Shown here in pieces: positions 10,630-19,221 of a DNA stretch of 64,000 bases; positions within the stretch are counted from its first letter, which is position 1; the number at the start of each line of letters is the position of its first letter. The notes under the pieces are model-generated. The model made no database searches and was not told the origin of the DNA. It saw nothing but the letters and a program-made list of their open reading frames with translations. This DNA comes from Pelomyxa schiedti (taxonomy: Eukaryota > Protista > Evosea). The position numbers and the translations under genes are program-made. The DNA lies in NCBI GenBank assembly GCA_020536535.1, contig JAHLWZ010000810.1:1-64000 (forward strand). Direction: 5' to 3'.

Positions 10630-10754
10630 AAAAAAAATAAATTTAGAAATAGAAAGACAAAATACAAGATTTTTTTTTTTTTGCTTCTTTGTCAGTTCAT
10701 TCGTCCTCATCATCAGTTTCCACAGGTTCCTTGGTTATATTAGGCCCAATTTAA

Positions 10755-12445
10755 CTAGATACTAGATACCCGCCCAAATTCTTCATACACTCTTGTTTTT
10801 TCCTCTATTCTCTCCCTTGCCTCTTCGAAGTACCCCTCGGAGAGACCTTCACCACCTTGTTTTTTTTTTTGGTTGGCGTTTTTATACTGGAAGATACATA
10901 CTAAACCAGTGGACAAAGGCTCTTTTGGCATAAGCCGTGTCGAACAGGCTGCATATTTCCGATAGGACATTTGAGATAGCAGAGTTATTAGAAACCACAC
11001 AAACAGAAGAAGCACTGGGGTCAAAGTGCAGGCTACTTTGCAACTTTTACCAGAATGAAGTAAGTACCAAAAAACGGGATGGGATAGTTACCGAGGGGCA
11101 ATTCGATACAAATGCTTTGAAATTACATGGATTAAAGTTCACAAATTCAGAGGAATGCGATTGCTTGTAAGCCGATAAGGCAGACACGGCCTGTATCTCG
11201 TTCACAGCACCGCGATAGAGAGCACAACAAGAGAGATACTTCCCCATATTGGAATGGTATGAGAGCATCTGCGACTCCGGCTCCATAGCTTTTTTTTATC
11301 AAGCAAGTTTATCTGAGTACACAAATTGAGATGGGAATGGACCATATGATAGTAGATCCAATGGCCCAATGGGATTGTGTTCTACAATTCCTTCAAGGTA
11401 TTCCCTCGTTGTGGCACTCATAGACTTCGAAGTCGTGCATGCCGTTTCGGGATTCTCACGTGTAGTGCTGTGTTGAGGACGATGAAGGGGTGCAAATGAT
11501 TCACACAAAAAGTTTGTATTGGGGAAGGGTGTAGAATTCACGATAATTTCATTGAACTTCTCTGAGGCGAGTATTGAAGCAATAGCTACTGATGCTGTTC
11601 TATTCACATCAACGAAGCTTGGCGTGACCAATCCAGTGCGATAGCGTAACACAGAGTACAAGGCACTGTTGTCGAAAAGGAACCAGGACGTTTGGTCCCC
11701 AGAGGTGCAAATGGCATCACACAAAGCAAGAATTGTGTTGTAAATAGACACAGTGTTCCGCTCCAATCCACATGGCAAAAAGGCAAAATTCGCATTTGTA
11801 ACAGCCATTCCATACTCACCAAAGATGAGAGAATCAAAAAAGCTTCCAAATCCAGAACCTGTTCCTCCTCCTTTTATTGTATGGAGGTAATGGTTTTAGC
11901 TTGATACTTGGAGGACATAAAAAAAAATGCATACCCATTGACCTCGTAGTGAAGAAGCCCCCGAAATTGTCACACCCCTCCACGAGCTTCCTCACACTTT
12001 CGAGTACTTCCTCTCTCAAGTCGCGGCAAATGGTGTAATGACCTCTCGTGTAGAAAATCCCACACTCGTTGCTAGCGTGCACTCTGGCACGTGACAATAT
12101 CCCCCCCTCGCGCTTTTGCTGCGCGTGATAATGTGTCACATCTGGCTGTCACATCTGTCACCAAGAGGAAAGGAAAAAAAACAGGCCGAGTCAAATGGCA
12201 AAACGCACCCCGTCAATGAGCACGGCCCGTGGAACGAAGTGCCTGCCACCGTCAGTTTCCGCGAAGAACGCAGAGGGGTGCGTGGGTGCTGGGGTCGACG
12301 TAAGGGGTGGTGCCCCGTTTTGGTGTTGGTTCGAGCTTGTTGTCAATGTTGTGGCTGCTAAGGCCGTCCAAATCGGGTCGGCTAAGTGTGTCCCTGTCTG
12401 CCCATAGTGAAGGCCGATGTACTGCCTCGTGGGGGTGTTAATCAT
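10755..12445 (-). CDS. Highly divergent alpha-type tubulin (multi-exon)
   Basis: Exons give RQYIGLHYGQTG...FFAETDGGRHFVPRAVLIDG, YTRGHYTICRDL...VRKLVEGCD, the signature MG|GGTGSG across an intron (~11842-11870), FLFDNSALY, MEPESQML...GKYLSCCALYRG and GEGLSEGYFEEARE...YEEFG. The order and alpha-specific motifs (RGHYT, GKY..CC.LYRG) match alpha-tubulin. Confidence 0.85.
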
Positions 12446-12818
12446 CTTTCGGCTGGCCCACTTTACCCTAAAACAAACAACTCACTCTTTCAAAATGCCT
12501 TCTTGTAAGCGACATTTACCAAACCCCCGCTTTCAAAGTGAGCTGTGCCTGCCTCCTGTGCCACACATTGGAAGTCACACCGTAGGGCGGTGTCATGTGC
12601 TGCGTCATTACAGGTCACGTTCGAGGCCTAGTGGATCTATTCCTAGAAAAACGACAGCAGTTGAAACGCCAGCGCGAAGGATGAGTAACCTCATGCCCTT
12701 TGGCCCAATGGGCGCCCAATGTTGGGACAAGGCGACAATAAAATAGCATCTATTGCCCATTCAACCAGGCCACCCAAGAAAGACAAAGACCGACACCGAA
12801 ACCGGTTGTGCGACCATC

Positions 12819-15800
12819 ATGAACCTTCATTCGTCTGTGAACACACCCGCGCCGTTGACTTCGACACCGCCCATACATTCGTCGCATGTGGTGCCCGCAA
12901 TGTCACCGCTTGTTTCTCTTCGAAATGCTGCAAGCAGAACAGAAAGAGAAAGGTACCAGCCACGGCACCGAGGTACCATGACATCAATCATTTTTCTCCC
13001 AACGTCACAGGTTGATGAGCGACATGAAAACCACTGATTTGGTTGCGGTTGTCAGTGGCCTCACTGAGATTTTGGGGAGCACACAGCCCAAGGAAGAAGG
13101 TGACCGTGAAAAAGCCAGGTTGGTGGTTGATCTTTGGCCTTCCCGTTTGCATTTAATCTCGTCCATTAGTGAAATTTTGGGTGAGATTGGAGCCTTGGAC
13201 CCAAGGCACTTTCCAATAAGGACTAAATTGCCGGAGCCAAAGCTGGATCAGTATGAAGTTGGGTTCACCGTTCTATATCTGCTTGTTCAGATTCCGTCGA
13301 GAAGAGAGCCGGTAAGGTCGTTCTGGATCTGCTGTTCCTAATGAATGGCAGGCAGTCTGCGGTGCTGGGAAGCACATTCTGCACAGTCTAGGAATATACG
13401 CAGTTCCTGTGGTAAAACTGGAGCCTTGGAGTTTTTTCCCTCACTGTGAATTCCAGGTAGAAGGCAAGGGAACAGAGTTCTGGAGGAGATTTCATCGTAC
13501 AGAACAAGAAGTCCTTCTGTTTTACCTGAGCTTCAACCCTCCAGAAACCCCCATATGCATGGCTACCAACGTAATGTAGACATATCTCTCTTCTCTCTAA
13601 CACTTGTTTGACTGGCCACCAGTGACTTCATGGTGAAGGTAGCTCGAGTGCTTCTGAATCTTCTGGGAATTCAATTGGCTGGGGAGTCCTCCCCACCCAA
13701 GTTAGTTCTACCAACTACTTCTCCCAATAACACACTTGTAGTTCGAGTTCTAGGACTTTCCCCAGTTGTCATGTTTATTATCTCCACTTACTCGTATTCA
13801 TTTCACCTAAATTGTAGGACGAAGAGGAAAAGCTTTGCGTTCGGGTCTTCGAACTTCTGGACTTGATTGAAATGTACCAGGAAAGCAACCAACACAAAGA
13901 CTTCATTAGCCAGCTTCCTTATTATGAACTACATTTGAAGGCAATGCGATTCGGGGAGTGTGTACCCCCAAAAGAAGTCATTCATATTGATCACAATTCA
14001 CAGCAATGCTCGAGCGTACATGTATCTAGAGAAGCATCTCAGAAAGGAGAATAGTTTAGAAAAACAATGTGAAACCTTTTTCCGTGCACTTAGGTTTAAT
14101 TTTGACTACGTTGACTTTGCATATGGTACTGTAACTCTTCCCTCTTGAGCTTGTCTGGAACCCACTATGATACTAGAATTGCAGGAGAAACCTGAACGAA
14201 TCATCGAACAGTCGCTTCAATTAGAACCCTCTGATCCAAGGCTCTGGGTAAACTTGAGCACTCTCACTGAAATAGATACTGGGATAGAAGATACTATCAG
14301 GGCAACAGTCAATCTGAAGCTAAAGGAACCGCCAGTGATTCCCCCATCTCCCGCCCTAGTGTCAGTGCTTTCCAAATTGGGTGAGTGGGACAAGCTAGAC
14401 GAATTATTGAAAAGAAGCCCTGAGACCAACGACAAGTGGGAAGTTTCCTTGGGGAGGTATATTGTGGGTTTACGAGTTTATCTTTTGTCTCATTCCCAAA
14501 GGTGTTTGTTCTTCCTAAACGCAGGGAAAAGAGACGCCTTTCAAACCCAGTTTGACGCAACAAAGGCAGCGGTTACTTCGTCAATCATCAGCACAAAGTA
14601 AGTCACACTAAAGCAGCACATTGATTAAACTCTTTTTGAAAGCTACCATCAAGTCTACCAGTATGTTCTTCATCTACACATGCTGCAGGACTTGCAAGAT
14701 TATTCAGAGCATGTCTGGAAAAAATCAAGTCTTTTCGAGTTGCCATCACGTCCCTTGACGCTTCTACAGGCAAAGAACTGTTGGATGCATGGAATAAACG
14801 CCTTAAAAGGGCCAGGGATAACTTCACGACTAAGGTGGTACTTAGTGTCTCTCTACACATGTGATTATATTAATATTTCTTTCTAAAAAACACATTCAGA
14901 AGTCCATTGTTGAATTGCATCGAATTCTACTTCACATGAAATATACTGCTTCCCACTCAGAGGCAGAGCCTAACTACACCTTACCCAGCATGTGCGTCTA
15001 GTGTGTGTCCTTTTGTTCTTACGCGCCTGTAGGTTATCATTGGAATACTCAATACTCAAACTCAACTGTACAGTACACCCCAAATTTGCGGCAACTCAAG
15101 CAGGGATAATAACCAGTGCTATGAGCGCGAAGATGGGTGGAATAATTAGTGCTCTCAGTGTCAGGGAGGACGTCATGTCTAGGGGCATTCTGGCCAGACT
15201 TGATATTCAGCAGGCCAAGGGGGCTTTAGCACATATGGAACCGATAGACGTCGCTGAGAAACCTTTTACTGCTGCAATTATTAAAGCCCGTGCTGGGTTG
15301 ACATTTTCCCTTCCTATATCATTTATAACTCACTTTCTACCCCAGGCAGAAGGTACGGCTCGCATATGCCGTTCTACTTGACTCATTCCACGCCGACGCA
15401 CTCGAAACACTTGAATCCACTGTTTCCCCATCAGCCACTTCGAAAAGAAATACTGACAACTATGCTTGCAAGGCAATACATCAGTACCGGTACACACTCG
15501 AGTGTGGAAAGAAGCATTCAGTTTACTGTATGAGGTTTGGGGAAGGGACAACAATTTATTTTATGTAATCTCCCCATTAGCAGAATACTGGATCTTTGGC
15601 TCAATAGTGGTGGTAAAGGAGACACTGATAAAACGCAAGTTGCTCCCAATCACTTTTTTCTTGCACTAAAAAGAAAACAGATTCGATCTGCTGTCCAGAT
15701 TGCATTAAAACGGATCTCTGGGGATGTGTGGGTCCCTGCCCTACCATTACTGGTGTGGCATTTCTCCAAGTTTGGGAACTATGATAACTCAGAAGCAGTC

Positions 15801-17647
15801 AAGTCATTGATAGAAAAGGTACTATTGAAAATGTCATCCCACACTGCACGCACCCGCGCAACTTACACTCTCCCTCTGTGGCCCATATCCAGGCTCTAGA
15901 GGCATGTCCTCAATCAGTGTGGTATCTGATGGAGACACGTGGCACTGCAAACGACCCCAAAAGGTACTGCCTTTTATCTTCACTCAATCTTAAAAGCACA
16001 AGGCTTTCATGGACTGGCATATTGAATTCACACAAACAGCTCAAAGAACTTTTTGATGCGGTATGCAGTTTTTATATCTCACAATTGCCTAAAAAAAAAA
16101 ACAGACCCGCCAACTTTTTGTAATTCTCAATGATATTAGCCGTCTCGGAGAAGCTGATAATAATGAGTAGGCCTCGTTTTTCCCTCTTGTTCCCTAATAA
16201 ATCTTATGGCAGATCACGGATAATGCCAAGAGTTGAAAGCTGGGTGACTTCCCAGAAATCAGGTCCGATTGTCATGTGCCCAACGAAGTCTGCGTTCACA
16301 AGTCCCTTCAATGAAGTACGTGTCTCTTACTCTCACTCTTCTCCTGGGTCTTTTCTTTCTTTTTGAACTGGTGTGTATCAATGTTGTCTTCTTCAGGAAG
16401 CACATCGAATCATCTGCCTGAAATACCAGAAATTACCTGAAATCTATCCAAACCCTGTTGTGACTTTCACGAGGAGCGATGGGTTTCAGAGCAGGTTCAT
16501 TTGCGCTCCAGAAGGGGAAATGCAGAAAGTTAGTGCTCTAAATTTATCCTTTTTTTTTGCTAAATCACCAGCAGGATGCAGGGGTTTTGCAGTTTATTGG
16601 GTTGGTAAATATGTCACTTGCCCAAAATCCTGAGGCCAGGCAGCGGAGACTTGGTCTGGCTTTTCATTCCTTCCGCAACACAATCATTTATTTTACATGC
16701 AGCCGTTCCTTCCTATACTTGCATTCCTTTTGGGGAGAATAGGGGTGGTATTGTGGAAAGGCTGCCTGCTGACCGGTTGTTATATGTGTGGGAGACACTG
16801 TGGGCCCAGGAACCATCTATGTGCTCAGATATTACAACAACGCTAAAACGACGGATTACGGAACCCCTGCTCTACAAATGGTTCTACCAACAATTCCCTG
16901 ATGTTGGAGCATGGTTTGAGGTTTGTAACAAAGCATGCCCCAATAATATCTACCCCCAAATAAGGCAAGGGTGAGGTTTATTCGTTCTGTTGCAGTAATG
17001 TCGATGGTTGGATATGTGATTGGGTAAGGCAGACCCATACATCATATAATTCAAACATCACACAATAATCGTGCAGACTGGGGAATCGGCACCCATCAAA
17101 CCTTCTGCTTTCACAAAATGGAGAAGTTATCCATATGGATTTCAACAGAATATTTTGGCAACCATCTGAGAGGGTAAGCTCTTTTAGCCACAAAACAGTC
17201 TGACTTGGTGTCAGGTACCATATCGATTAACGCACAACTTACAGCACGCTATGGGGATTCGAGGGTTAAATGCATTTAGCAGAATAAGTGAGATAACACT
17301 ATCTACTTTGCGTACTACAAGAAACAGGTTCAACCGCACCACACCAGACACCATTGGGGTTTCCCTTTAACTGAGGTGGTATTGTTAGGTATGCCCTAGT
17401 GAATATGCTCCAATGCACACAGCAACCCAAGAATAACGAGGACATTAACAAGCGAGACAAGGTTCTCCACCTCCTGCAGGTTCTAGCTCCTTCCTTGTTC
17501 TGAAATTTGTTAATTTGGTGTTTTTTTTAGGGTCGAGTGAGTGAAGGGAAGCTCGATGTTGTTGCACAGGTTCGCCGCACCATCGAAAAAGCCACTGACC
17601 AGAATAGACTGAAGGAAATGTATGCAGAGTGGGCACCTTGGGTGTAG
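12819..17647 (+). CDS. ATR/Mec1-like PIKK (FAT + kinase-like + FATC), probable pseudokinase; 5' end uncertain (ATG candidates 12495 or 12819)
   Basis: RSDGFQSRFICAPEGEMQK|DAGVLQFIGLVN..EARQRRL; CIPFGENRGGIVERL; PLLYKWFYQQFPDVGAWF; AVMSMVGYVIG|LGNRHPSNLLL..GEVIHMDFN; ER|VPYRLTHNL; FATC VRRTIEKATDQNRLKEMYAEWAPWV* (stop 17645-17647). The DFN, MSMVGY and RLTHN motifs are ATR-type. Confidence 0.85.
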
Positions 17648-17733
17648 AATAGGTTTTGGCCACAATGAACTCCAATTTCTAGAATAAAAAGCCAAAAAGT
17701 TCTTCTTGGAATTCAACAAAGGGATTATTTATG

Positions 17734-19221
17734 CTATACGTAGAGCATGGGGAAGATGGAGCGCGGGTAGTAGGGGGAGGGGCAATGGATGGTAAACAAG
17801 ACGGTGCCAGTGGCAGCATCAATGAAGGCATGTCTGGTGCCGAACCTTGGTGGAACTGTGAGCACTCGGCACGTCAATGCCGCAAGGGGGATGCCGGCAG
17901 TCTTCTTGAGGTCTGCTGCGTCACATTCCAAGGTTGTGACAACAATGATCCCGCACCCAGCAGACACCATTGGCGGCCCGTGGTAGCAGTACACTGCGGT
18001 TGGTGAGGGTGACTTTGTTGGGGATGGCAGAGGTGTCAACAGAGTGGGAAGTGAGTAGACGAGGCAGTGGAGCCAATCGTGGTTCCTATTTGTGAGGAGT
18101 AATTGGGTTTCATCCAGCCTGGCAAGAACCAATTCCGGCCTATTCCTCATCCACTTTGAAATTGTGCCGGCACTCAAATCCAGCAGTGTCTGATTTCCGG
18201 CCTCATCAGCAATTGGGAAAAAGTAACTGAACGTGCCCATTTGTCGTTGCACAAGAGGTTCCCACAGAGTTTGTACATCAACCCCGAGGCTTGAAAGATT
18301 GCACTCCTTGGTGTAGACGGCAGATGGAGTCTCGGCAGCGCCACTGATGAGGTAATGCTCAACGTGCAGGATCTTATCGCCGGTAGTAGTCGTGTAAGTC
18401 AGCTCCACCAAGTCTGAGAGGCAACTGTACGGCCAAAGCTGCCACAACCACTTTAGAGACAAGATTTTGATTGGATCCTTGAACAAAGGGTGATTTCCCG
18501 GGGGCATCTGCACTTGACCATTGAGAACCTTCCACACCACCAGTGATGTACCACCTGATTCGCTTTGAACGGCGATGACAATCCACTTGCTGTTAGAGCA
18601 GACAGCAGGCCTTTCTTTGGAATCGATAGATATGACTGTTTGGGCAAATGTGTCTGATTGCTTTTCAACACGCCACCGATCGAATTGATGGGTATAGAAC
18701 TTGTGGGCGTGCTTCTCTATCACACACCTTAGGTCCTTCTTTGCGCCAATTTGCCCAACAAGGTTGCGTGGGACTTGCACAGCACTAAACGGTCCTTTGA
18801 GGAGCCCAAGAGTTTGCGATATGACAAACGTGACATGGTCGTGCACTAGCAGCTCCACCCCGTAATATTGGCACAGCTCACCACGGAAAAACCCCCCCAC
18901 AGAGCTGTCAAATGTGCTGCTTCCGAACTTCCACTTGGCGAACGGCACCGTCACATCCCTGTCAGGATCCATCACCCACCTTCTCCCAATCATTTCCACT
19001 AGAGAAGCAGGCAATGCCGCGATTCCGCAGCGTCGGGGGCCTTGCGACGCCGCCTGCTGTTTCTTGCGTCGTGCGGGGGGCGGAGCGGGTACGTCGTGGG
19101 CGAGCCGCGCCGACGCGAGAGCGACGTACTGCTCGGCAGCGAAAAGGGGTCTACTGCCGGTATTGCACTCAATGGCGAATTCGAAAGGAATGGCGTTGCT
19201 GCGTTTTTTGTTTCCTTTCAT
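17734..19221 (-). CDS. Intronless ~495-aa hypothetical protein (N-terminal helix AALPASLVEMIGRRW, beta-rich remainder)
   Basis: Uninterrupted 505-codon ORF with first ATG at 19221. No recognised domain. Confidence 0.7.
   Translation of the reverse strand: MKGNKKRSNAIPFEFAIECNTGSRPLFAAEQYVALASARLAHDVPAPPPARRKKQQAASQGPRRCGIAALPASLVEMIGRRWVMDPDRDVTVPFAKWKFGSSTFDSSVGGFFRGELCQYYGVELLVHDHVTFVISQTLGLLKGPFSAVQVPRNLVGQIGAKKDLRCVIEKHAHKFYTHQFDRWRVEKQSDTFAQTVISIDSKERPAVCSNSKWIVIAVQSESGGTSLVVWKVLNGQVQMPPGNHPLFKDPIKILSLKWLWQLWPYSCLSDLVELTYTTTTGDKILHVEHYLISGAAETPSAVYTKECNLSSLGVDVQTLWEPLVQRQMGTFSYFFPIADEAGNQTLLDLSAGTISKWMRNRPELVLARLDETQLLLTNRNHDWLHCLVYSLPTLLTPLPSPTKSPSPTAVYCYHGPPMVSAGCGIIVVTTLECDAADLKKTAGIPLAALTCRVLTVPPRFGTRHAFIDAATGTVLFTIHCPSPYYPRSIFPMLYV

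Follow-up and report, generated by a model that had tools for sequence, protein, structure and literature searches.

Several pseudokinases, including the JH2 domain of JAK, STRAD, KSR and HER3, regulate an active sister kinase with a fold that was kept while catalytic residues were lost. All of these have the ePK fold. Among PIKKs, which have the PI3K-like fold, the only pseudokinase described in the literature is TRRAP/Tra1 (PMC8926402, PMC8625110). This protein of ~3800 residues is ancient and pan-eukaryotic, serves SAGA and NuA4, and shows that the PIKK fold can be a pure scaffold (PMC8926402, PMC5982823).

Inactive forms of ATR have been made in the laboratory by replacing the catalytic-loop Asp (human D2475A, mouse D2466A). 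D2475 is the standard kinase-dead position; a single change there is enough to abolish activity, and the mutant protein is dominant negative on wild-type ATR within the ATR-ATRIP tetramer (PMC6990542). In human ATR, ATRIP and most of the TOPBP1 activating domain dock on the N-terminal HEAT solenoid (residues 1-1071), the FAT domain provides the FAT-FAT dimer contact, activation spreads cooperatively over both protomers, and roles in catalysis have been described for the ATP-orienting Lys K2327 and the Mg ligands N2480 and D2494 (PMC13468113).

Here we describe a gene seen in a single draft genome, assembled from single cells of the anaerobic amoeba Pelomyxa schiedti. Its product KAH3757014.1 resembles TRRAP in that FAT, kinase-like domain and FATC are present and the protein has been kept after loss of catalytic residues. 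It is much shorter (~1175 residues), and the loss of its catalytic residues occurred independently, from an ATR ancestor and, as sampled, in one amoeba lineage. In our reading it is a real, transcribed ATR paralog, catalytically dead, kept by selection and acting non-catalytically in the ATR pathway, to which we assign a probability of about 0.5.

Gene structure and ATR-type identity

The window (the whole stretch of 64 kb that was analysed) encodes the deposited protein exactly. The gene lies at 12681-17647 on the + strand, as do all its parts given below, and has 30 exons and 1175 codons plus the stop; its 29 introns are 39-81 nt long and all of the GT..AG type. Exons 1-2 with the intron after them (12681-13010; aa 1-75) encode an N-terminal extension that is unrelated to ATR, predicted to be disordered (pLDDT <50 over residues 1-58) and without credible alignment with KAH3766329.1, the second ATR of this species; these two exons are known from annotation alone and lie outside the RNA contig coverage. 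Exons 3-22 (13011-16315; aa 75-874) encode an M-HEAT2-like segment and the FAT domain, collinear with residues 727-1710 of KAH3766329.1 and with human ATR from ~1289. They are followed by the kinase domain in exons 23-28 (16397-17327; aa 875-1107; aligned to human ATR 2311-2548), a shortened linker lacking the conserved F-x-x-D-P-L motif in exon 29 (17389-17479), and FATC with the stop codon in exon 30 (17531-17647), which is covered by RNA contigs and by itself matches Pfam FATC with E 4e-8. A divergent tubulin gene begins 236 bp upstream. A splice-aware dynamic-programming model based on codon log-odds from long open frames recovered the FAT exons roughly correctly, but whatever the penalty it spliced the short kinase exons wrongly; the hand-built model of the kinase exons agrees with the RNA joints and, with an unbroken frame, is identical to the deposited protein.

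The order of FAT (E 1.8e-10, residues 421-545), PI3/PI4-kinase-like domain (PI3_PI4_kinase, E 4.3e-34, 906-1104) and C-terminal FATC (E 7.3e-6, 1145-1174), all above the Pfam cut-offs, is that of the PIKK family. In phmmer searches of the PDB the best match was human ATR (143 bits, E 5e-41; four collinear stretches over residues 1289-2636), followed by Mec1 (113), mTOR (95), ATM (85), Tel1 (72) and SMG1 (65). TRRAP/Tra1 chains were absent from the best 60 of 154 PDB sequence matches, which reach as far as PI3K-gamma and PI4K-alpha, and also from the 50 Foldseek matches listed. The AlphaFold2 model (pLDDT 68, pTM 0.69; in the kinase region most blocks of 10 residues have pLDDT 70-90) is closest to ATR FAT-kinase structures (TM 0.69, E 2e-31), ATR chains occupying ranks 1-9. 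In a tree rooted on one TOR, in which ATM, SMG1, DNA-PKcs and TRRAP were not represented, the protein was nested within the ATR clade with starred support. Taken together, this evidence places KAH3757014.1 in the ATR subfamily, apparently closer to ATR/Mec1 than to other PIKKs; a TRRAP identity is ruled out by the PDB ranking and the position inside the ATR clade, and the assignment as an ATR-type, non-TRRAP PIKK made in the earlier note is borne out.

The M-HEAT_ATR profile reached 17.2 bits on this protein against a cut-off of 27, and HEAT_ATR and UME were undetected by Pfam, in a region that is nevertheless collinear with KAH3766329.1, where M-HEAT_ATR (6e-22) and HEAT_ATR (3e-14) are recognized. 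Shorter pieces were uninformative: the 72-aa kinase exon alone found no match in the PDB, a 150-aa FAT piece matched only designed PPR/TPR repeats, the 32-aa catalytic-loop exon did not discriminate between TOR, Vps34, PI3K and ATR, and Pfam searches on ten open segments returned kinase and FATC matches only.

Active-site residues lost and kept

The Lys that orients ATP (human K2327) is replaced by Ala911, encoded by GCT at 16505-16507 within the reading TTC ATT TGC GCT CCA GAA GGG GAA ATG CAG AAA (FICAPEGEMQK), and HMMER sets ficapegemqkd opposite mmckpkddlrkd of human ATR. Among 123 aligned sequences, of which 121 are ATRs, one is a TOR and one is KAH3757014.1, this column holds Lys in 121 (all 121 ATRs), a gap in one and Ala in KAH3757014.1 alone. 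The catalytic-loop Asp (human D2475) is replaced by Asn1040, encoded by AAT at 17084-17086 in the reading GGA CTG GGG AAT CGG CAC (GLGNRH, opposite glgdrh), at a column with Asp in the 122 other sequences (121 ATRs and one TOR). KAH3766329.1 has AAG (Lys) and GAC (Asp) at these codons, which differ by 3 and 2 bases, respectively. Both replacements had been proposed in the earlier note, together with an uninterrupted frame and retention of DFN, VPYRLTHN and FATC, and all of these readings hold, with the Ala codon present in the window and in RNA contigs and the Asn codon in the window and a DNA contig.

Further positions around the nucleotide site are altered. The invariant D-D-L-R stretch after the Lys (columns 99-100% conserved in 120 ATRs) reads G914, E915, M916, Q917 (16514-16525, also in RNA contigs), so that DD became GE and Arg became Gln. 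The Trp of the IEWV motif, present in 100% of 120 ATRs and encoded by TGG in KAH3766329.1, is Arg964 (AGG, 16759-16761); we take this Trp to line the adenine pocket, as in mTOR and ATR structures. In the catalytic loop, Ser1044 replaces an invariant Glu directly before the retained Asn1045 (17096-17101; human N2480), and the DFN motif keeps D1058 (codon 17138-17140; human D2494) and is followed by Arg1061 in place of an invariant Cys (17138-17149 for the motif and Arg1061 together). The activation loop after DFN is 5 residues shorter than in KAH3766329.1, and the C-lobe DPL motif, whose D, P and L columns are 97-99% conserved, is deleted. The additional ATP-site changes, the deletion of the DPL motif and part of the activation loop, and the absence of the N-HEAT half had not been recorded in the earlier note.

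Retained elements comprise GLG-x-RH-x-x-N, His1042, N1045, DFN, VPYRLTHN, AVMSMVGY and the W-x-P-W ending of FATC. Of the residues that define an active kinase, K2327 and D2475 are therefore lost (Ala911, Asn1040), and N2480 and D2494 are kept (Asn1045, Asp1058). Judged from its residues, the protein has kept the kinase fold and lost positions essential for catalysis, as expected of a pseudokinase; with the gamma-phosphate-orienting Lys, the acidic/Arg motif, the IEWV Trp and the catalytic Asp all replaced, neither productive ATP binding nor phosphate transfer would be predicted. The two Mg ligands, His1042 and the conserved frame of the catalytic loop, in a kinase domain that is the most conserved region of the protein, would suit a weak or unconventional kinase, or another nucleotide-dependent activity, as in some former pseudokinases. 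Such an activity is nonetheless highly improbable in view of at least six independent changes at or near the nucleotide site (Lys to Ala, Asp-Asp to Gly-Glu, Arg to Gln, Trp to Arg, Asp to Asn, Glu to Ser), of the shortened activation loop and missing DPL motif, and of the fact that the change at D2475 by itself abolishes ATR activity (PMC6990542).

The locus is transcribed and correctly spliced. Spliced RNA contigs were found in three runs from two studies, at depths of 1-6 and at the 3' end only. Contigs of two runs, one from each study, cover 16478-16528, including the Ala codon, with zero mismatches; the introns 16316-16396, 16529-16574 and 16654-16702 are seen as RNA joints, and those near 17328-17388 and 17480-17530 appear in contigs of two runs. 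These contigs reach neither the 5' three quarters of the gene nor positions 16788-17161, where the Asn codon lies; this codon is supported by the window and by one DNA contig whose sample is probably that of the assembly.

This last circumstance, the assembly of the genome from seven amplified single cells (PMC8887013) and a break of the Logan assembly at 12520-12573 would fit an artefact, either amplification or sequencing errors behind the replaced residues or a chimeric or mis-joined contig that removed the N-terminal half. However, the Ala and Lys codons differ at all three bases, the Ala codon and the substitutions next to it recur without mismatch in the RNA contigs of both studies, hundreds of further differences separate the two paralogs, and the contig continues for 12.6 kb upstream of the gene through other genes, with no N-HEAT coding sequence in the 64 kb. 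An origin in error is, in consequence, barely credible.

A partial duplicate of a canonical ATR and its maintenance

The same genome encodes a second ATR, KAH3766329.1 (2023 aa), with the Lys, the Asp and the N-terminal HEAT region all kept; a second ATR, for which the earlier note had suggested a search, is thus present and intact at both of the replaced positions. The two proteins are sisters in the tree (99/94), with the ATR of Mastigella eilhardi next (98/95). Their alignment is collinear (residues 74-1175 vs 727-2023, E 3e-120, 30% identity), the identity being 43-44% in the kinase domain and FATC and 32-33% in the rest, including FAT. Among 27 comparable introns, 21 are common to both genes in phase and in position within two alignment columns (15 exactly), and the copy therefore arose by partial duplication of DNA; a retrocopy is ruled out by the 29 introns, most of them common to the paralog.

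The order of M-HEAT2-like segment, FAT, kinase domain and FATC is that of canonical ATR/Mec1/Rad3, among which KAH3766329.1 is the nearest to KAH3757014.1. The protein differs from canonical ATR in its missing 726 N-terminal residues and in the exchange of the Lys, the Asp and no fewer than four other invariant residues in the active-site region. The first 726 residues of KAH3766329.1, that is N-HEAT and the first part of M-HEAT, have no counterpart, so that the N-terminal HEAT solenoid typical of ATR is absent. A tblastn search with these 726 residues against the whole 64 kb found no match (best E 2.2), and this blank also rules out a longer gene with N-HEAT exons further away in the window and the tubulin gene inside one of its introns. 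On sequence grounds, KAH3757014.1 is best described as a Pelomyxa-lineage duplicate of the 3' two thirds of an ATR gene, made at the DNA level and with a product of about half length. Its terminal branch is 3.21 vs 0.42 for KAH3766329.1, a rate ~7.6 times higher. Such a long branch makes the placement in the tree less certain; long-branch attraction would draw the protein to the TOR outgroup, away from its paralog.

Between the paralogs, pS is 0.74-0.82, which is saturated, and dN is 0.49-0.76; a dN/dS ratio is not computable because the synonymous sites are saturated. All 58/58 splice dinucleotides are intact and the 1175 codons contain no internal stop, although neutral drift simulated at 0.05 substitutions per site introduced a mean of 7.7 stop codons and 0/300 runs stayed open. 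An intact frame and intact splice sites at synonymous saturation evidence that the locus is not evolving neutrally and, with the spliced RNA, support the view behind the earlier note that it is neither silent nor neutral. Retention of the ATR consensus in KAH3757014.1 vs KAH3766329.1 was 0.57 vs 0.91 at near-invariant positions, 0.43 vs 0.70 at highly conserved ones and 0.25 vs 0.39 at moderately conserved ones. The loss is about equal over the conservation classes, suggesting that the kinase-type constraint was broadly relaxed, with no preserved interaction surface singled out.

Exhaustive HMMER searching with the FAT piece among 1.84 billion representatives brought up no ortholog, nor did word-indexed searches with the kinase region at full-length or fragment size; the full-length-size search also missed the Mastigella ATR, and a word index could likewise miss a very divergent ortholog. 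As far as sampled, the protein is confined to one amoeba lineage.

The many invariant residues and motifs lost, the blank ortholog searches and the thin RNA coverage, restricted to the 3' end, would be expected of a redundant duplicate in decay, transcribed but dispensable, whose lost residues are the first visible damage. This explanation is improbable: transcripts are correctly spliced, dN is well below saturation, and the open frame with all its splice sites has persisted to synonymous saturation, whereas neutral simulation closed it at 5% divergence in 300/300 runs. Given the intact frame, release from constraint could only have been very recent, which leaves a long history of a dead kinase under selection unexplained. 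The data argue instead that KAH3757014.1 is probably an old, expressed pseudokinase maintained by selection rather than a pseudogene.

Possible non-catalytic function

The dominant-negative effect of engineered kinase-dead ATR offers a model for the proposed action of KAH3757014.1 inside the ATR pathway. The engineered and the natural protein have lost the same catalytic-loop Asp; the former, however, is full length and binds ATRIP and thereby RPA-coated DNA, whereas the latter is missing that half and is altered at many other sites as well. Trapping on RPA-ssDNA is thus not expected of it. Rather, KAH3757014.1 may pair with canonical ATR through FAT-FAT contacts, or act as a decoy that competes for partners and substrates of the FAT and kinase domains, and either could damp or retune checkpoint signalling. 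A scaffold or decoy role is what we infer, and a specific ATR-directed mechanism has at best an even chance and perhaps somewhat less. Like JAK JH2, STRAD, KSR and HER3, the protein would be a retained duplicate of an active kinase. The FAT region, needed for a heterodimer, is only 33% identical to that of KAH3766329.1.

In a more specific and doubtful version, the N-HEAT-less, ATP-blind paralog would be a natural dominant modulator that joins ATR by FAT-FAT contact and, as activation has to pass through both protomers, sets the threshold of the replication checkpoint. If true, this would be the first case of a DNA-damage kinase giving rise to a PIKK pseudokinase, and likewise the first of a PIKK under the control of a dead paralog.

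Alternatively, the protein may have left the ATR pathway and serve as a stand-alone helical scaffold with new partners, its fold kept as an architectural platform, for which TRRAP is the precedent. The extreme divergence over the whole length, with the long branch, the even loss of consensus residues, the new and unrelated N-terminal extension and the disappearance of the ATRIP/TOPBP1 docking region are all in line with such a role. We consider it unlikely, though the strongest of the alternatives, given that conservation is still highest in the kinase domain and FATC and that ATR-specific sequence signatures persist. A non-catalytic role within the ATR pathway is retained as the preferred reading.

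No report of an ATR-derived pseudokinase was found in the searchable literature, and we know of no genetic tools for Pelomyxa schiedti. Next to TRRAP, KAH3757014.1 is a candidate for a second kind of PIKK pseudokinase. Its ATR-derived FAT-kinase-FATC core was apparently kept long after the loss of catalysis and of the half that docks ATRIP and TOPBP1, which implies a non-catalytic job of this core. If that job is to pair or compete with canonical ATR, the amoeba would hold a natural equivalent of the kinase-dead, dominant-negative ATR of mice and cell lines, and if it is directed at ATR, a compact construct of ~1100 residues may become available for the study of the non-phosphorylating roles of the ATR core.

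The gene and its substituted kinase domain

At 16440-17160, the + strand of the window encodes a PI3K-like kinase domain in short exons. Reading of the window sequence confirmed the replacement of the ATP-binding Lys and the catalytic Asp claimed in the earlier note: GCT at 16505-16507 encodes Ala911 of the ATR-like protein P0001, within F-I-C-A-P-E-G-E-M-Q-K, and AAT at 17084-17086 encodes Asn1040, within G-L-G-N-R-H. Kinase exons assembled by hand, based on GT..AG sites and frame continuity, yielded a single open frame of 301 codons with FATC followed by a stop at 17645-47. An exhaustive HMMER search with a FAT segment of 150 aa gave one strong match, P0001 (KAH3757014.1, 1175 aa), from Pelomyxa schiedti contig JAHLWZ010000810.1 of GCA_020536535.1, in which window and contig coordinates are equal; its C-terminal 301 residues are identical to the hand-built model. 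Exact mapping of the deposited protein placed the gene at 12681-17647 (+ strand), with 30 exons and 29 introns of 39-81 nt, all GT..AG. The P. schiedti genome, derived from seven micromanipulated cells, is intron-rich, and ATR goes unmentioned in the paper describing it (PMC8887013).

Among all solved structures, a sequence search ranked human ATR as the best match of P0001 (143 bits, E 5e-41), in four collinear stretches (residues 1289-2636), followed by Mec1 (113 bits), mTOR (95), ATM (85), Tel1 (72) and SMG1 (65), with no TRRAP/Tra1 chain within the 60 best matches. Pfam recognized the kinase domain (4e-34), FAT (2e-10) and FATC (7e-6), with M-HEAT_ATR scoring under threshold. An AlphaFold2 model built with 40 ATR homologs (pLDDT 68, pTM 0.69) had ATR FAT-kinase structures as its best structural matches (TM 0.69, E 2e-31). 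This ranking, together with the sister position of P0001 to the P. schiedti ATR described below, upholds the proposal of an ATR-type rather than a TRRAP-type protein.

Ala911 and Asn1040 align with K2327 and D2475 of human ATR, respectively. Across 123 aligned sequences, the Lys position is K in 121, a gap in one and A in P0001, and the Asp position is D in 122 and N in P0001 alone. K2327 orients the gamma phosphate in human ATR, where N2480 and D2494 are Mg ligands (PMC13468113), and the mouse equivalent of D2475A is a standard kinase-dead allele (PMC6990542). Further departures are D914G, D915E, L916M and R917Q directly after the Lys position, E1044S in the catalytic loop, C1061R after DFN, deletion of the D-P-L motif and an activation loop five residues shorter with one Gly lost. 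W964R affects the Trp of the IEWV motif, which we take to line the adenine pocket as in mTOR and ATR structures. The Mg ligands N1045 and D1058, the latter being the DFN Asp that had been noted as kept, are retained along with His1042 and the surrounding frame. In total, at least six changes lie in or around the nucleotide site. Of the 68 columns at least 97% conserved across 120 ATRs, 29 differ in P0001, compared with 6 in P0011, the canonical P. schiedti paralog.

Origin from the canonical ATR gene

The second ATR with intact Lys and Asp that the earlier note proposed to look for was found in the genome. A search with the P0001 kinase region retrieved KAH3766329.1 (P0011, 2023 aa) at 45% identity, with HEAT repeats, M-HEAT_ATR, FAT, HEAT_ATR, a kinase domain and FATC, and with the motifs FLCKPKDDLRRD and GLGDRH. 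Its kinase region scored 289-350 bits against 120 other ATRs, with one plant entry higher. P0011 is compact, with 50 introns and without a UME Pfam match (contig JAHLWZ010000158.1, L002:3001-13406). The segment between its kinase domain and FATC is very short, as in P0001, a shared trait suggesting that shortening of this regulatory segment preceded the duplication.

Residues 74-1175 of P0001 align collinearly with 727-2023 of P0011 (30% identity, E 3e-120), similarity being highest in the kinase domain and FATC (43-44% vs 32-33% elsewhere). A maximum-likelihood tree built from 40 sequences, with a TOR as root, shows both proteins as sisters (99/94), and the ATR of Mastigella eilhardi, the closest to both in the tree, branches next (98/95); by this topology, the gene was duplicated after Mastigella had diverged. 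Terminal branches measure 3.21 substitutions per column for P0001 vs 0.42 for P0011; long-branch attraction would pull P0001 to the long TOR outgroup, not to P0011. The aligned region contains 27 P0001 introns, of which 15 share column and phase with a P0011 intron and 6 more have the same phase within two columns, the shared introns including 7/7 from the kinase domain to FATC. Based on these common positions, P0001 arose when part of the gene itself was duplicated, and a retrocopy origin is ruled out.

The first 726 residues of P0011 had zero credible matches within the 64 kb window (best E 2.2), and the truncation of P0001 on this contig is real. Annotated residues 1-75 are unrelated to ATR, predicted disordered and devoid of RNA support. 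According to the domain limits of human ATR (N-heat 1-1071, M-heat 1072-1376, FAT 1381-2206, KD 2207-2644; PMC13468113), P0001 starts inside M-heat and keeps FAT and KD. Upstream, a tubulin-family gene (10697-12445, - strand, 477 aa; Pfam Tubulin and Tubulin_C) is oriented divergently from the P0001 gene, at a start-to-start gap of 236 bp. On the other side, an annotated 482-aa gene with no Pfam match on record (17734-19221, - strand) converges on it, with stop codons 86 bp apart, and is expressed, since run X5 has an RNA contig of 1250 nt starting at 17731.

Expression and selection

Contigs from four public runs were compared with 12300-17900 of the window, with no part of that stretch excluded for resemblance to human sequence. 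Five P0001 introns appear as exact joints in RNA contigs (16316-16396, 16529-16574, 16654-16702, about 17328-17388 and about 17480-17530). The stretch 16478-16528 is covered without mismatch by one RNA-derived contig in each of two separate studies (run X3 record 6, run X4 record 8), evidencing that the Ala codon and the adjoining G-E-M-Q substitutions are present in spliced RNA. Within the four runs, RNA coverage is sparse and limited to the 3' end of the gene, with none upstream of 16268 or at 16788-17161; the Asn codon is supported by the window and one DNA contig, whose source is probably the sample that was also used for the assembly. For run X1, the Logan DNA assembly is fragmented into short, alternative contigs at 12520-12573, before the annotated start. 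It also deviates from the window at two bases, 12609 (T>G, again before the start) and 15870 (C>T, intron 18), both outside coding sequence, a pattern that resembles variation between alleles or between cells.

Simulated neutral drift at 0.05 substitutions per site produced a mean of 7.7 in-frame stops and open frames in 0/300 runs. All 116 splice-site letters of P0001 are intact (116/116), an outcome with a chance of 3e-3 under neutral drift at 0.05 and 9e-6 at 0.1. Synonymous sites between P0001 and P0011 are saturated (pS 0.74-0.82), against dN values of 0.49 for the kinase domain and 0.71-0.76 for FAT and M-HEAT. Protein change lies mostly on the P0001 branch. Synonymous change is expected to be about equal on the two paralog branches, and average omega on the P0001 branch is therefore well below 1, saturation precluding a figure. 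Consensus residues are kept at 0.57 in P0001 and 0.91 in P0011 for near-invariant positions, 0.43 and 0.70 for highly conserved and 0.25 and 0.39 for moderately conserved ones. Relative to P0011, P0001 thus keeps consensus about equally across conservation classes, which counts against a simple preserved-fold story, and the old kinase-type constraint seems broadly relaxed. The codons AAG, GAC and TGG of P0011 correspond to GCT, AAT and AGG in P0001.

A probable PIKK pseudokinase paralog and its possible action

P0001 is an expressed protein of ATR descent that has no N-HEAT region and is under selection; the initial observation is confirmed and its interpretation supported and extended. As it lacks the N-HEAT region and key catalytic residues of an ATR, it is regarded, on sequence grounds, as a pseudokinase paralog descended from ATR rather than an ATR proper. 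TRRAP has been called the only PIKK pseudokinase in the literature searched (PMC8926402, PMC8625110), where no report of an ATR-derived one was found, and none appears in a review of trypanosomatid DNA-damage kinases. Neither the HMMER search with the FAT segment nor word-indexed searches with the kinase region found an ortholog, and P0001 is to date known from P. schiedti alone. For the M. eilhardi ATR (P0016 and cluster members, EukProt EP01105), the sequences consist only of incomplete transcripts (764-1418 aa, several isoforms), so that the lack of a P0001-like sequence in that transcriptome is weak evidence. The finding is bounded by sparse RNA coverage, a single draft genome and orthologs not found, and the pseudokinase function is a prediction.

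In the human ATR-ATRIP ring, ATRIP-ATRIP contact occurs between the N-heat domains and FAT-FAT contact at the opposite end; the main docking sites of TOPBP1 are N-heat and the N-heat/M-heat1/FAT nexus, and activation is cooperative in both protomers (PMC13468113). Kinase-dead ATR is dominant negative, which was attributed to a stable tetramer (PMC6990542). P0001, keeping FAT and KD without the half that docks activator and ATRIP, could pair with canonical ATR via FAT; alternatively, it could compete for KD-binding partners or substrates. P0001 may instead be a scaffold for something else, in the manner of TRRAP, a reading favoured by its low identity to P0011 in FAT. If P0001 acts on ATR, by FAT pairing or by KD competition, either route would lower or retune ATR signalling in P. 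schiedti.
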